This document shows positions 2,853 to 9,896 of a stretch of DNA of 64,000 bases, piece by piece; the stretch's first letter is position 1; every line of letters starts with the position of its first letter. The stretch is from NCBI GenBank assembly GCA_024704765.1, contig JAKMXF010000362.1, positions 62,001-126,000 of the forward strand. Direction: 5' to 3'. Source of the DNA: Oopsacas minuta (lineage: Eukaryota > Animalia > Porifera). The notes below the pieces were generated by a model. It was not told the origin of the DNA. It did no database searches and saw nothing but the letters and a program-made list of their open reading frames with translations. The translations under genes were made by a program, and so were the position numbers.

Positions 2853-3473
2853 TTATAAATTTGTACTCACCATTTTCCAATAGTCCACACTGTAGTCACT
2901 GTTATGTTACAAATTTGGAGTTTGTGAAATTTAATATAGATTTTGACAAAGGCGAGTTTTTTTCGTACATTATTATATAGACTTCACAAAATTCTGTTTT
3001 CATTTTTCTGAAGTAATCTTGTATTAATTGTCTGAATAAGAAGGGACCCTCAGAGGCCATTTTTGCCGATTTACGTACATTTGTGGTATTTGTTCAAAGA
3101 TATATTCCAAAATATACCTTGTATGTATACTCTTTCATGTCCATTTTTTGTGAAGGGCATTTTGTAACCCTGAGCTAAATGCTGGCTTGACCAGCATTTG
3201 GTTGTCTCATCCAGCGGACCAGCCATGTCACACTAAAACCAGAATTTCAAAAAAGTATAAATTCGTTATGGCTGATCAGCAGCAGCTTGGATTATTATCA
3301 TATCAGGAGACAATCTCAGCAAATATATAAGAGCTAAAAATTAGATAAACTTGACCAGCCCACTCGTTTTATGAATATATACAAGATGCTCTGCCCATTT
3401 TCACCAATTTATGCAAAGGTGTATACGACCTGTCGTACTTTGTAATTAATCTCATTAAATAAACACATTAGCT

Positions 3474-6400
3474 ATGTCTACCTCAGCAAAGCTTCACTCA
3501 GGAGCTGAGATGCCTCTAGTAGGACTAGGAACATGGAAGTCACAACCTGGTCAAGTAACAAATGCTGTTAGGATTGCTATTGATGCTGGGTACAGACATA
3601 TTGATGGTGCTGCTGCTTACGAGAACGAGAAAGAGGTAAGTACTTACTAATAGCTGAATAAGTGCCAGTTATGTAGGTATTTTATTTCTTGCTAGTTTAT
3701 TCTTATATTGATTCTAAGTCCACAAATAACAGTCCTCGTTTTTTAAGCTAAGAAATTGCTATCTGTACTTTCTTTGGGTCCTTATGACTATATTGTTGGA
3801 GAATTATTTTTCCAAATAAGGTAGTATATGAATATTTTCATTTAATACTCGTACGTTCGTAATTTTGAACAAATTTTGATTTCCCGGGGGGGTTCGAGTT
3901 TCCTGATGTTAACTGTATTATTATTATTGCATGTTTGTTGTAGGTGGGAATAGCTCTGAAGGAAAAGATAGGTACAGTGTGTGAAAGAAAGGATCTGTTC
4001 ATAACATCAAAGTTATGGAACACTAAGCATAGTCCAGAAGATGTACTCCCCGCCATCAAGCGTACCCTCTCAGATCTACAGCTGGATTATTTAGATCTAT
4101 ACCTTATACATTGGCCTACTGGGTTTGCTAAGAGTGAGATGCTAATGCCAAAGAAGGAAGACGGATCGATTATCTATTCAGACATACACTACGTGGAAAC
4201 ATGGAAGGCTATGGAAGAGTGTGTTAATCAGGGATTAGCTAAACACATAGGGATATCTAACTTCAATGCAAAGCAAGTAGAGGAGGTGAGTTACATATTT
4301 CATTATATTTTATTCAATTGTATAGTGAATATATATCTAGTTGCTTTCAAGAGTACATATCCTAATCCGGATACGGGGTACCTATATTTCGTTCCTTACA
4401 TATATGTTGAATCAATTATTTTAGAGACGCTACTCTAGTTGTTGGAGTAGGGATTACCTAAGATTAGTGGTATACCGTGTGAGTAAATTCGGAATTCCGC
4501 TCTGAGTCTTGCCTCCAGGATGCTTAGAGAAAATTAGCTTTATAATTCTCCAAATATCCCTGATTTTACTTTCTGAGTTACTCAAAATATTTCAGGCCCG
4601 CGCTGGCAGCACGTCTCATGCCCTGTTATACAGAAAATCTAAAAATTAATATGCGGGGCCGGAAAAAGCGAGGGGGCGCTTATTCGGACCCCTAGAGTAG
4701 ATAGAAACTTGAGTTACATTACACTCTTAGCATATTATCGATATACAGCTGTATCCCCTCAATAATATTACTCCAGTATTGATGTATTCTATCTATACTG
4801 GAGTATGTAACTTTATCTGTAACAATATACTATGATGTACTATTTAATAGGATCAGTACAGTACTGTATTAGTAATGGCTTGCTTAGGAAATTGTTCATC
4901 TCAGGTATTTAACCCTCTCCAACTCCTGTACGAGGATACTGTAGCTCTTATAGACTCTACCACCAGTTCTCTAACTCTATCTTTGTATACTTCTAAGATA
5001 ACATTAACTAATAAGAGAACTCAGTCAATAACAGAGACAATATATCTTGATGACGTAGTTGGTGTTAAGCTAGATCATACTACAGCTGTTAATAACAGTT
5101 ATATAATTATCATAATATCCTACCCCGTAGTGTCTGGTATTAGACTACCTGGACAGCCTCATCGAAGTAGGAATGAGTGCCGTATACGGTGTGATAAGGA
5201 GACAGGTGACCAGTGGAGATATCGTATACTATCTGCTCTACAGAGCTATTTACTGGGTACATATGAGTATTATGACTGTACTAATCCCTGTGATGAATTA
5301 TTCTTAGATAAGCGTACTCTGTTAGTAATTATAAACCCAGTTGCTGATAGAGGTACTGCTCCTCGTGTGTATCGTGATGAAGTAGCGCCTATACTCAGTG
5401 ATGCTGGTATCAATACTCTGTGTGTACAGACACGATACCAAGGACACGCTAGAGAACTGATACGATCATATAATCTATCCAAAATACATGGTATATTGTG
5501 CGTGGGAGGAGACGGTACAGTGCATGAGGTTATGAATGGACTCATGAAGCGTACAGACTGGGAGATAGCTACACGTATGCCTGTATGTCCTATACCCTGT
5601 GGAGCAGGTAACGCACTATGTAAGACAGTGCTAGAGGAGTCCAATGAACCATTCAGTGTTATAGGCGCCACATTGCTAGCTGTGCATGGAGCTTATATTC
5701 CAATGGATCTAGCAACGGGTCAGTTCACTAACTACACTGTATACTTCTTCTTGAGTTTCTCATGGGGGATTATAGCTGATACAGATATAGAGTCTGAGAG
5801 ATGGAAGAGTTTAGGGAATTCTAGATTCAAACTAGCTGCTGTTAAGTGTATAGTTGTTAATAAGGTGTATGAAGGACGGATACATTATCTAGAATTGTCT
5901 GCGGAGTACAAGGTTCTCAGGGAGAGGGAGTCTATACCTTTAAGTTCATCTTTATTCACGGGTTCAATTGATAGGAGTATCATACAGCCCTCTAATGGTC
6001 CCTTATTCCCGCAGAACACTATTGCCCCTCCTCTCCCACCGTATCAGACAGAGCACTGTCCTCTTAACCCCTCCACCATGATGCTACCTCCTCTAGACAG
6101 GAGGATTGACTCCCTGGGGTGGAGATCTACAGAAGGAAGTTTTGTAGTACTCACTACCATGTTACTGCCTTACCTCACTAAGAATATACTGTTTTCCCCC
6201 GCTCAAAGAATAGGATTCGGATCTTTCCAGCTATGTACACTCCAAGACAGGAGATCCCGCCTACAGCTGATCCGTGGATTGTCTGCTATTGACAATGGTA
6301 GACACCAGGAGGATATGAAGCTTACTCGTGTGGAAGCATTCAGACTAGATCCAGCTGTAAGAGAGGGGATATACTCTATAGACGGAGAGAGATTCTCTGT

Positions 6401-7272
6401 AGAACCATTCCAGGCTCAGGTGTTGAAACAGGTTGCTAGAGTCATGTGCCGTAGGAATAAGAGTAGAGCTACACAAGCACAGATATGCAACTCTAACTGA
6501 TTCTTAGTGATTTATACTTAATCATTGACGTAGTAGTAATATTTGCACTTCTCAAAATTAATTTTAATTATGAATGCTTAATAACTCCCGCTATATCGAA
6601 CCTAAGGAACTCGCTAATTTCTAAGTAACTTAGATATAAACGGAATTCTACAATTTATTTATTGTCAGTATTGGCAATAATACTACAGTTTTAGACTTCG
6701 ATATATAAGCGGGTATTTCCAGATATCCGTGTTCGATTACCGATATGACAGGAGTTGACTGCTGTATTATTTGCTTATTGATTTAATTATTTACCGTATC
6801 ACCAATTCAGGTGTACAACAATGCTAAGATAAAGCCTGCGGTGAATCAGATAGAACTCCATCCGTACCTGACACAGCCAGAACTCATCAAGTTCTGTCAG
6901 GAGAGGGATATTATCGTAACAGCATATAGTCCCCTTGGGTCTCCAGACAGACCCTGGGCTAAGACGGGAGATCCTAGTCTGCTGGAGGAGCCGAAGGTGA
7001 AAGAAATAGCAGAGAAGCTCGGCAAGACTCCTGCTCAAGTGCTGATCAGATTCCATATCGAGAAGAAATGTGTTGTACTCCCAAAGAGTGTCACTAAAGA
7101 GAGAATAATAAGTAATTTCGATGTGTTTAGTTTCCAGCTGTCTCCCGATCAAATGCAGGTTCTAGAGGGCCTCAACAGGAAATGGAGAGCTTGTCTGCCT
7201 ACTGTAGTGGTAGATGGTAAGGAGGTACCCCGTGATAGAGAACATCCATTCTATCCATTCGTACCTTATTAA
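3474..7272 (+). CDS. Aldo-keto reductase (AKR1-like), 3 exons: 3474-3635, 3944-4285, 6811-7272; 321 aa
   Basis: Motifs [80 protein letters not shown]. Both introns are phase 0, with GTAAGT...TAG and GTGAGT...CAG boundaries. Confidence 0.92.
4875..6500 (+). CDS. SPHK: Sphingosine kinase-like protein (N-terminal PH-like region plus DAGK-type catalytic domain), nested in AKR intron 2
   Basis: 541-aa uninterrupted ORF with [48 protein letters not shown]-x4-LGNSRF, EAFRL and IDGE. Confidence 0.85.
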   Translation: MACLGNCSSQVFNPLQLLYEDTVALIDSTTSSLTLSLYTSKITLTNKRTQSITETIYLDDVVGVKLDHTTAVNNSYIIIIISYPVVSGIRLPGQPHRSRNECRIRCDKETGDQWRYRILSALQSYLLGTYEYYDCTNPCDELFLDKRTLLVIINPVADRGTAPRVYRDEVAPILSDAGINTLCVQTRYQGHARELIRSYNLSKIHGILCVGGDGTVHEVMNGLMKRTDWEIATRMPVCPIPCGAGNALCKTVLEESNEPFSVIGATLLAVHGAYIPMDLATGQFTNYTVYFFLSFSWGIIADTDIESERWKSLGNSRFKLAAVKCIVVNKVYEGRIHYLELSAEYKVLRERESIPLSSSLFTGSIDRSIIQPSNGPLFPQNTIAPPLPPYQTEHCPLNPSTMMLPPLDRRIDSLGWRSTEGSFVVLTTMLLPYLTKNILFSPAQRIGFGSFQLCTLQDRRSRLQLIRGLSAIDNGRHQEDMKLTRVEAFRLDPAVREGIYSIDGERFSVEPFQAQVLKQVARVMCRRNKSRATQAQICNSN

Positions 7273-8381
7273 CGATAGATTTCTAGTGATTTATTCTGAT
7301 TAGAATTCAGTTACTTTTAGTTATTTTTAGATTTCTATTCACTTAGTTTAACTTTATATTCTAAATTTAGTTTCTTGTATTATTCCTTTATTATGATTTT
7401 CTTATATTTCTAATGGGTATTGATGAAGAACTCGACCAGTGGCGGATCCAAGAGGGGATGGGGAGATTTATCGGCTGTACCATGGGCTATTCTACCTACC
7501 GTTTTGTCTCCGAGAATGCCAGTTTTAACATTCTCATTTGGGGAGAACTAAACCTCTTATTCATTGCGATTTGACTTTCTTGGGTTTCCTGTATGAAGAA
7601 CCAGCATCTACCGACACCACTATAATCCGACTATGTTTCTGATCTGAAATAGCTTCCGACGATACAAATTCGCCTGCCATAATTCGATAATTTGCTAAAC
7701 AGACAAAGTTTTCATGTCTCAACTGGTGTTGGACCATCTTTCATTTTATTTAGGCGTAATTTAAACTATAGGAAAGTCCAATATGCAATGAATAAGGAAG
7801 CTCAGTTTTTCAATTTATATGTGCTGTTTTACATAAGTAACACATACGTACAGACACAGTAAATCCTCGCTAAACCAAACATCCCAGTACTTATGTCGTT
7901 CAGATTGGTGAATAGTAGAGAATCAATACTATAGGATCTAGGTGTATATATTTTCGAATCTTATCAAGGCAATTATGAAAAGGTTGCCAATATGTTTTAT
8001 ATGAAATTATAATAATCCTCAGAAGAATTTGAATACGAACGTTTAAAACCAAGGATAGTATCAGCTATCTGCCTTGATGGGATTTACGAGGGGTTTATTT
8101 GACATATACTCTACACTTCAGCTACTGTTTTCAATAAATGTATTACATGTATTACAACATACACAATAATAATATAATCAATTCTTATTACACATAAACT
8201 GATCCTAAGTACATGAAGTGTATGATCCTTTATGATAATTAATAAATTGGTAATCTACCTAGAAATAATAGCATCAGAATTATCCGGTCTAATTCTTAAT
8301 AGCCATAACAAGCTATGTAATGAGTATTAATAAGATACATAAATATGTGTCAGTATAGGTTGTTATTAGTTGTACTGAGCA

Positions 8382-9896
8382 ATGCCTAAGTTCAGTGTGA
8401 CCGTGAAATGGGGTAAGACCCGGTTCACAGATCTTGAGCTGAACACAGACGAGAGTCCTCAGGTGTTTAAAGCTCAATTGTTCGCTCTGACGAGTGTACC
8501 CCCTGAAAGACAACGTGTCCTCTACAAAGCCATGACCCTATCAGAGACAGAATGGTCCGCATTCTCCCCTCACCTCAGAGACGGTATCACACTGATGCTC
8601 CTAGGGACAGCAGCTGAGATACCAAAGAGACCAGAAGCGACTCCAGAAATGGCAGAAGCTATGGAACTAGAGCAGAGTGGTTCAATGGCGATACCTCGTG
8701 GTATTGTCAACTTAGGCAATACCTGCTATATGAACGCTACTGTACAGTGTCTTCGGACTATTCCTGAGCTCAAAGAGGCACTCAGAAACTTCTCTCCACC
8801 CACAGACCCCTCTCTAGCTCCACACGATCCTACCGCACAGTCTCTTACCGTATCATTACGTAACCTATTCTCATTCCTCGATAAGACAGGAGACCCGTTA
8901 CAGCCTCTTCTGTTCCTACAGTCTCTACATGCTGTGGTGCCTACATTCGCACAGAAGGGTCCAAGAGGAGGTCTGCAACAACAGGACGCTCAGGAGTGCT
9001 GGATAGAGATATTGAGAGTTATAGGAGGATTCCTTCCTTCTAACAAACCAGCTATAGACTCCAATCCTCTGGGCAGGAGAGAGGGAGCTACTGCTACAGA
9101 TTGTCAGAGTAATATGATAGAGCAGTACTTCTCAGGACTACTGAAGTGTAGTTACACCTGTAAGGAAGCTGATGAGCCTGTCACCAGCTCCGTAGAGAAG
9201 TTCATGTCTCTACAGTGTTACATAGAGCATGACGTCAGATACATAGAATCTGGTATAAGGTTTGGTTTGAAGGGTGAGGTAGACAAGCCTAGTGCTAGTC
9301 TAGGTAGGAACTGTGTGTATACACGTAGCTCTCTAGTGGGTAGGTTGCCTGGGTATCTGACCGTGCAGGTTATGAGGTTTGATTTCGGTAAGTACACTTC
9401 TGCGGTCGCAGGAGATGAGATGGTGTCACGGAAAATACTCAAAGATATAAAGTTTACTTTCAATTTGGATATGTTCCCTTTCTGCACCCCAGAGCTACAA
9501 GCTAGACTAGCCCCTATGCGGGGGAGATTCAAACAGCTGGAGGACTCTAGAGATGAGAAGAAGGCCGGAGAGATTGAGACCGAGAAGGGAGCGGAGGTAC
9601 CAGAGCTCCCTCTACCTCCTGAGGACCCAGGTTCCAATAACTCAGGGTACTACGAGCTGATAGCAGTCCTTACACACCAGGGACGATCTATTAACTCAGG
9701 ACACTACGTAGCCTGGGTGAGACAGGAGGAGGAGGACTGGATCAAGTTAGATGACGACAAAATTGATCAAGTAGATCCTGCTACCGTTCTCAAACTGAGC
9801 GGGGGAGGAGATAATCACATAGCATACCTGCTATTATACGGGTCACGTAGTTACGAGCTAGCTGCTGCAGCTCCTAGGAAAAAGAAGAAGAAATGA
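8382..9896 (+). CDS. USP14: Ubiquitin carboxyl-terminal hydrolase 14 (USP14/Ubp6)
   Basis: N-terminal UBL domain (V-x-VKWGK...FKAQLFALTSVPPERQ), Cys box NLGNTCYMNATVQCL, QQQDAQE, His box HQGRSINSGHYVAW, WIKLDDDK, LSGGGDNHIAYLLLY. Intronless. Confidence 0.93.
   Translation: MPKFSVTVKWGKTRFTDLELNTDESPQVFKAQLFALTSVPPERQRVLYKAMTLSETEWSAFSPHLRDGITLMLLGTAAEIPKRPEATPEMAEAMELEQSGSMAIPRGIVNLGNTCYMNATVQCLRTIPELKEALRNFSPPTDPSLAPHDPTAQSLTVSLRNLFSFLDKTGDPLQPLLFLQSLHAVVPTFAQKGPRGGLQQQDAQECWIEILRVIGGFLPSNKPAIDSNPLGRREGATATDCQSNMIEQYFSGLLKCSYTCKEADEPVTSSVEKFMSLQCYIEHDVRYIESGIRFGLKGEVDKPSASLGRNCVYTRSSLVGRLPGYLTVQVMRFDFGKYTSAVAGDEMVSRKILKDIKFTFNLDMFPFCTPELQARLAPMRGRFKQLEDSRDEKKAGEIETEKGAEVPELPLPPEDPGSNNSGYYELIAVLTHQGRSINSGHYVAWVRQEEEDWIKLDDDKIDQVDPATVLKLSGGGDNHIAYLLLYGSRSYELAAAAPRKKKKK

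Follow-up and report, generated by a model that had tools for sequence, protein, structure and literature searches.

A single-exon sphingosine kinase gene nested on the host strand within an aldo-keto reductase intron of the glass sponge Oopsacas minuta, and its fusion with the host in a public protein model

In the glass sponge Aphrocallistes vastus, nested genes make up about 12% of all genes and are described as conserved among glass sponges (PMC10282587). The count of 83 nested genes for Oopsacas minuta likely reflects the method of annotation, which strongly affects such counts, and at the glassin locus the O. minuta orthologue of a nested A. vastus gene was annotated as an exon of another gene (PMC10282587). 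Same-strand nests are also known from humans and Drosophila, where the host reads through the 3′ end of the guest and splices over it, the expected costs being cryptic polyadenylation and interference between the two transcription units. In humans, guests on the strand of their host account for about 37% of nested genes (PMC3192792). A further arrangement with points of likeness is the spliced-leader operon of nematodes, tunicates and ctenophores, in which a longer primary transcript includes a downstream open reading frame (ORF) of the same strand with an acceptor near its ATG. Here we describe a locus of O. minuta (Porifera) in which an intron of an aldo-keto reductase (AKR) gene holds a complete sphingosine kinase (SphK) gene in the same orientation. 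The locus lies within a stretch of 64,000 nucleotides (nt) of GenBank assembly GCA_024704765.1 (contig JAKMXF010000362.1, positions 62,001 to 126,000, forward strand), hereafter the window, and coordinates are window positions unless a related locus is named.

The locus shares with the A. vastus nests a single-exon guest in an intron of a spliced host, conservation between hexactinellids and a mis-merged annotation in O. minuta (PMC10282587). It differs from them in that the orientation of the guest changes between lineages while the host intron stays constant, and the pairing of an AKR1-type host with a SphK guest is not mentioned in the available part of that report. Compared with the human and Drosophila nests, the scale is much smaller: the genome measures 61 Mb and the intron 2.5 kb, of which the guest ORF takes up two-thirds. 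The host also appears far more abundant than the guest in complementary DNA (cDNA). An initial annotation of the window, made from the sequence by itself, had called same-strand nesting much less usual than antisense nesting; this is overstated, as about 63% of human nested genes lie on the opposite strand and about one-third on the same strand (PMC3192792). The type of nest is already known in glass sponges, and what this locus adds is the correction of a fused protein and an orientation flip within a conserved host intron, with no new mechanism.

We consider it highly probable that the two genes form a nested pair that is ancient and, for glass sponges, ordinary: a three-exon reductase host and an autonomous single-exon kinase guest on the host strand. 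Evidence on transcripts comes from assembled contigs of run X4; no run is on record as RNA, and X4 was classed as cDNA by its behaviour, while X1 and X2 are DNA runs from the same sample. The parts of the two genes are:

3474–3635, + strand: AKR exon 1; 54 codons, with the catalytic Asp and Tyr (IDGAAAY); donor GT at 3636 used in X4.
3636–3943, + strand: AKR intron 1; 308 nt, GT..AG, empty in Oopsacas; an X4 joint skips the 308 nt, and intron contig depth is about 4.
3944–4285, + strand: AKR exon 2; 114 codons, with the catalytic Lys (TSKLW) and His (IHWP).
4286–6810, + strand: AKR intron 2, the intron that hosts the kinase; 2525 nt, GT..AG; X4 joint 4285>6811 in three contigs.
4875–6500, + strand: single-exon sphingosine kinase ORF; 541 amino acids, an N-terminal extension of about 148 amino acids followed by a SphK1-like two-lobe catalytic core.
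6811–7272 including the stop, + strand: AKR exon 3; 153 codons plus stop, encoding the C-terminal half of the barrel and the NADPH-binding segment; acceptor AG at 6809–6810 used in X4.

The kinase ORF is uninterrupted, runs on the strand of the reductase and lies wholly inside intron 2. X4 contigs join 3635 to 3944 and 4285 to 6811, and both skipped stretches begin with GT and end with AG; neither joint is carried by the DNA runs X1 and X2. Among the joints listed, the only one leaving position 4285 goes to 6811, so that the exons flanking the guest are joined in one mRNA. One X1 contig is colinear over 3300–7457 with zero mismatches, and the locus is therefore free of an assembly break. The initial annotation had placed a complete 541-residue same-strand kinase in a 2525-bp AKR intron 2 at 4286–6810, which proved exact to the base, and had held that the host spliceosome must skip the kinase; it had named a transcript joining 4285 to 6811 and the integrity of the assembly as the points on which this would turn, and the joint in X4 and the unbroken X1 contig bear it out on both.

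Turning to the host, the three exons add up to 321 codons (54 + 114 + 153), and all exon borders are in phase 0, as established from the ORF listing and direct reading of the sequence. Both donors match the consensus (GAG|gtaagt for intron 1 and GAG|gtgagt for intron 2), and both acceptors are AG. When each exon was searched separately, exons 1, 2 and 3 matched positions 3–51, 52–148 and 152–290, respectively, of the 291-position Pfam family Aldo_ket_red (PF00248), and residues ~4–54, 55–169 and 175–321 of AKR1A1/AKR1B1 structures (PDB 2alr, 4gac and 1ads). The three exons thus tile a single AKR1 fold with no gap and no overlap, which together amounts to a complete (alpha/beta)8 AKR domain. 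In the structure alignments the catalytic tetrad Asp-Tyr-Lys-His and the C-terminal NADPH-binding segment are all present: IDGAAAY of exon 1 is in register with IDCAHVY of the AKR1 structure, TSKLW and IHWP of exon 2 are in register with the same segments of 4gac, and the NADPH-binding segment of exon 3 is in register with IPKSVTPARIHEN of the AKR1 structure. The catalytic and cofactor roles of these residues we take to be those established for AKR1B1. The catalytic core aligns with AKR1A1/AKR1B1 over its full length and retains the motif residues, and on this evidence the host is assigned as an NADPH-dependent aldo-keto reductase of the AKR1A/AKR1B type. ARAGORN found no tRNA in the intron, and the Rfam search gave just a sub-threshold U6 match within exon 3.

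The guest carries a DAGK_cat domain (PF00781, E 2.2e-24), and its best structural relatives are those of human SphK1 (E 3.7e-47), which match in two stretches (residues 149–341 and 399–516) that cover both lobes. Acylglycerol kinase matches at only 6e-23, and bacterial lipid kinases likewise score far below SphK1. The SphK motifs GDG, GxGN, the Asp of WGxxADxDxxSE and the C-terminal DGE are all found and, including IDGER, stand in register with PDB 3vzb. The catalytic core aligns over its full length with human SphK1 (PDB 3vzb and 4v24) with the motif residues retained; the sponge protein differs in having an additional N-terminal region of about 148 amino acids and a Pro-rich linker of about 60 amino acids that finds no match. 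With a DAGK domain followed by the C-terminal lobe of SphK, the guest is assigned as a sphingosine kinase of the SphK1/2 type. No second close SphK of Oopsacas turned up in a protein similarity search with the kinase.

The kinase is also under constraint. Its comparison with organism B (run X5, about 96% identical) over a contig covering 5139–6578 gives a ratio of non-synonymous to synonymous substitution (dN/dS) of about 0.25, based on 38 changed codons, of which 22 are synonymous (on about 273 such sites) and 16 non-synonymous (on about 831 such sites), with 39 of the 54 differences listed; among the differences listed, the non-synonymous changes fall mostly within the variable linker, residues 343–394. 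The X5 contigs are too short to span the nest in organism B. These figures indicate that the kinase evolves under purifying selection. Kinase and reductase are both intact with their catalytic motifs and both are conserved in relatives, as expected of two functional genes.

The absence of introns from the kinase could suggest a recent retrogene or a transcriptionally silent passenger, the RNA over it being retained host intron, an explanation that we regard as very improbable. The initial annotation was right that the kinase is intronless, but 9872 of the 16340 O. minuta gene models are single-exon (PMC10282587), so that a single-exon kinase is unremarkable in this genome. No A-tract follows position 6500, and a search around the ORF for target-site duplications, inverted repeats and an A-tail found only short repeats at chance level (flanking 12–13-mers). 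None of the hallmarks of a processed retrogene (a multi-exon parent, target-site duplications or the remnant of a poly(A) tail) was found. Lineages with kinases as divergent as 67–73% identity have the nest in common, so that it is not recent, and at such an age the search for marks of insertion carries little weight. The single close SphK in the similarity search and the dN/dS of about 0.25 likewise speak against this explanation.

Evidence for transcription of the kinase itself comes from the following stretch of coverage:

4385–6657, strand not given by the contigs: colinear X4 cDNA coverage; two contigs, 4385–5335 and 5306–6657, which span the entire kinase ORF.

Contigs of this kind give neither strand nor true transcript ends, and their depth is a rough guide to level. 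Summed X4 depth is on the order of 1e5 in most reductase-exon bins, about 4 in intron 1, and 60–158 across 4385–6657. Depth over the kinase is therefore about 1/1000 of that over the host exons, which lies in the range of unspliced precursor and would suit a silent passenger in a retained intron; against that origin, it is 15–40 times the depth over intron 1, and in bin means the coverage ends at 6657, which is 157 nt past the kinase stop and 17 nt past a TATAAA hexamer and falls short of the intron end by 150 nt, with none in 6658–6683. The colinear contigs over 4385–6657, the end of coverage and the excess over intron 1 are consistent with a separate transcription unit for the kinase, although the contigs show no starts, ends or strand. 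Two elements of intron 2 are of interest here:

4816–4874, + strand: conserved block directly 5′ of the kinase ATG, containing TGTAACAA (4818–4825), TAATAG|GATC (AG at 4849–4850) and TAG at 4870–4872.
6635–6640, + strand: TATAAA hexamer; cDNA coverage ends 17 nt further on.

The block at 4816–4874, whose TAG stands two bases before the ATG, is kept in the relatives that carry the kinase on the host strand, and is a candidate 5′ untranslated region, core promoter or splice-acceptor region. No AATAAA or ATTAAA occurs in 6501–6810, and the TATAAA at 6635–6640 is a candidate weak polyadenylation signal of the kinase. We propose that the kinase is transcribed at a low level from a putative promoter of its own within the 589 nt between exon 2 and the ATG, as the conserved sequence directly upstream of the ATG suggests; in one related lineage, described below, the kinase is antisense to the reductase and must there use its own promoter. 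The kinase transcript would end at the weak, non-canonical TATAAA signal. Host polymerases would mostly read past this end, since the site is weak and the strong donor GAG|gtgagt would commit the intron to splicing; a weak site behind a consensus donor, with most polymerases reaching exon 3, fits a guest depth about 1/1000 of that of the host exons.

Several points weigh against an autonomous guest. Its promoter is inferred from sequence, and the RNA support consists of assembled contigs of a single run that was classed as cDNA by its behaviour. The upstream X4 contig begins at 4385, 490 nt 5′ of the ATG and among several upstream ATGs, and part of its signal could be unspliced host RNA. Spliced-leader trans-splicing, moreover, has been reported in glass sponges, and would offer the kinase another route to a mature mRNA.

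Two further features of the X4 contigs may be recorded. The two kinase contigs overlap by 30 nt (5306–5335) and differ in depth (60.6 versus 158.3), with the break where the N-terminal extension gives way to the catalytic domain. Possible causes of this break are an internal start, a minor variant or 3′ bias. Across the reductase, over 3441–7247, X4 has more than 1000 contigs, which suggests that the reductase is among the most abundant transcripts of this library, contig depth being a poor measure of expression.

To compare the locus between species, six orthologues of the kinase, with 67–73% identity, were taken from sponge-like assemblies (ERZ25069837, ERZ25071281, ERZ25072730, ERZ25766962, ERZ25072740 and SRR11455651), and their loci were searched with the translations of the window exons. 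Two of them, L001 and L003, agree with the window in order and strand, with exons 1 and 2, the kinase, exon 3 and a USP14-type gene all in one orientation, and in L007 the kinase is followed by exon 3 on the same strand 201 nt downstream. The reductase of L004 is intact, and its exons 2 and 3 enclose the kinase in antisense orientation. In L002 (with its extensions L006 and L008), reductase exons 1 and 2 are followed by an antisense kinase and, beyond it, an NHL cluster; reductase exon 3 was not found within about 24 kb, and the reductase of this lineage is either broken or has a very long intron. The remaining locus, L005, has no reductase within 8 kb of the kinase. Wherever the reductase exons occur in these loci, their borders are identical, with GT and AG everywhere.

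In the kinase tree, the root of which is not resolved, Oopsacas stands on its own branch, L001, L007 and L003 form a same-strand group (98/99), and the antisense and un-nested loci form another (94/100). Judged by these sequences, the orientation of the kinase tracks the kinase tree, and one inversion of the guest inside the intron would suffice for both orientations. Because the nest is common to the lineages of the kinase tree, it predates their split; synteny in related sponges, which the initial annotation had named as a means of dating the insertion, thus points to an old nest. The same annotation had entertained, as speculation, that lipid or aldehyde metabolism might couple the two enzymes. 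Nothing in the data speaks for this: one lineage carries the kinase inverted relative to the reductase, another lacks a reductase close to the kinase, and since orientation and nesting vary between lineages, co-transcription is not a conserved requirement.

Some of these loci show peculiarities of their own. At 7712–9329 of L005 the kinase has a frame break or a small intron near residues 143–165 and forms the longest branch of the tree; it may be decaying, or it may have gained an intron. Reductase intron 1 of L001 and L003 measures 2.2–2.9 kb and contains an antisense ORF with NHL repeats (L001 5137–6125, − strand; L003 4810–5103, − strand). The NHL cluster of L002, L006 and L008 stands where exon 3 would be expected.

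The public annotation of the locus presents a different gene. Part of an NCBI protein of 848 amino acids named 'alcohol dehydrogenase [Oopsacas minuta]' (hereafter P0001) matches the kinase ORF with 100% identity, and the protein carries both PF00248 and PF00781. P0001 is composed of reductase exons 1 and 2, eight codons that begin at the in-frame AG at 4850|4851, kinase residues 1–519 up to CAG|GT at 6431|6432, and exon 3. It thereby supposes the following feature:

4851–6431, + strand: 'internal exon' of P0001; not supported.

An exact database look-up of the 541-residue kinase returned no record, because the public model is fused. Taken at face value, P0001 would be a real chimeric AKR–SphK–AKR enzyme in which the kinase ORF supplies the internal exon 4851–6431, or the kinase ORF would act as an alternative terminal exon; to either we give hardly any credence. 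The reading frame does permit a fusion: the acceptor at 4850|4851 keeps the frame of both exon 2 and the kinase ATG, CAG|GT at 6431|6432 keeps that of exon 3, and it was the fused model that the gene predictor picked. However, the joints required, 4285>4851 and 6431>6811, are both missing from the X4 list, even though no other feature of that run is as deep as the reductase; the only listed joint from 4285 leads to 6811, and the X4 contigs are colinear across both sites. The fusion would also insert 527 residues at residue 168/169 of the reductase and so split the AKR barrel.

Comparison with the relatives points the same way. The conserved AG and the kinase ATG are separated by 24 nt in Oopsacas and by 28 nt in L001; in L007 the spacer measures 25 nt and includes a stop in frame. 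The frame of the fusion is thus not conserved. L001 has GC in place of GT at the donor used by P0001, and the 22 C-terminal kinase residues that P0001 discards are kept in all lineages. In L004, where the kinase is antisense, a fusion is impossible. A genuine AKR–SphK fusion, for which joints in RNA and a conserved frame would be expected, was thus rejected on the length of the spacer, the stop in L007 and the loss of the donor in L001. We conclude that the 848-residue fused model is an artefact of gene prediction.

The correction has consequences beyond the locus. The 848-residue 'alcohol dehydrogenase' is really two enzymes, and hidden inside it is what is apparently the only close SphK of O. 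minuta, which matters for comparisons of gene content and of the sphingolipid pathway across early animals. The locus also provides an RNA-backed example of the under-calling of nested genes in the O. minuta annotation.

A shared precursor of host and guest, as in spliced-leader operons, is the remaining explanation to be weighed. In an operon-like scheme some or all of the kinase mRNA would be cut from the host pre-mRNA by trans-splicing of a leader near the ATG, at the acceptor TAG 4870–4872 or AG 4849–4850, and polyadenylated near 6657, each host transcript yielding either a reductase or a kinase mRNA. A trans-spliced leader of about 37 nt has been reported from A. vastus (PMC10282587), and the likeness to the operons of nematodes, tunicates and ctenophores thus extends to a spliced leader reported in glass sponges. 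In reductase and kinase alike, an acceptor-like TAG precedes the start codon by two bases, an AG about 24–28 nt 5′ of the kinase ATG is kept in all same-strand species, and the X4 contig that extends into the intron 5′ of the kinase ATG is outron-like. We nevertheless judge this scheme unlikely. No leader was found at the kinase locus, and specifically no leader-bearing loose end at 4851 or 4873, among the 24 of 219 loose ends listed; the X4 contig is colinear across both candidate acceptors. Unlike in the known operons, the sponge guest lies within an intron and not past the 3′ end of the upstream gene, and in a related lineage it works antisense, which shows that the gene can run on its own promoter.

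Acceptors beside start codons were also considered as a footprint of spliced-leader addition across the window, and were set aside as uninformative: of the 12 long ORFs of the window, 6 have an AG no more than 6 nt from the ATG, against 38% of all ATGs when the same 8-nt upstream window is used, with no clear enrichment.

Extended to the same-strand nests of glass sponges in general, the idea would make the host pre-mRNA a shared precursor, from which the joint 4285>6811 yields the reductase, and leader trans-splicing with polyadenylation near 6657 yields the kinase. This wider form seems to us quite doubtful. Were it true, the active reductase promoter would also feed a low, fixed fraction of kinase transcript, making the locus an intron-embedded operon, and the flipped orientation in the sister clade would record a change between expression that depends on the host and expression that is autonomous. 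The retention of the same guest in one host intron across divergent glass-sponge lineages, despite a change of orientation, argues that nests persist by inertia and not by co-regulation. The same-strand and antisense loci offer a natural paired comparison for transcriptional interference and for possible use of a spliced leader.

A further element lies in the 3′ part of the host intron:

6697–6759, strand not assigned: short dispersed repeat of intron 2, present in multiple copies in the genomes of organisms A and B.

A spike in depth, with a rise of several-fold to more than tenfold and many loose ends, falls at 6702–6737 in all four runs, including that of organism B, and in all four the contigs diverge on both sides of the repeat. 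A second copy was not found within the 64-kb window; a 34-nt reverse-strand match occurs in the same reductase intron of L001 (7702–7735). The repeat is a candidate miniature inverted-repeat transposable element or regulatory motif.

Several short motifs around the two genes may also be noted. The motif ATGACACYGT is common to the same-strand loci L001 and L003 and to the antisense clade, and is not present in Oopsacas. Across the 64 kb of the window the 11-mer TAGTGATTTAT has exactly two occurrences, at 6505–6515 (5 nt past the kinase stop) and at 7284–7294 (12 nt past the reductase stop); it is not conserved in the related loci. A motif with an ACGT core, resembling a cAMP response element, lies 20–30 nt past the kinase stop in all four same-strand species: it reads TGACGTA in Oopsacas (6525–6535), TACGTCAC in L001 (9670–9685) and L007, and TACGTCGC in L003, followed in each by AGAC. 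The TAGs that precede the two start codons by two bases (3469–3471 for the reductase and 4870–4872 for the kinase) share the form ATTAG-NN-ATG, and the reductase orthologues have TAG or CAG 2–4 nt before the ATG.

The nest is flanked in the window by an ORF with a TRAF-type zinc finger (1383–2852) and a single-exon USP14-type deubiquitinase gene (8382–9896). USP14 lies directly downstream of the reductase in L001 and L003 as well, and in L004 a TRAF-like ORF adjoins reductase exon 3.

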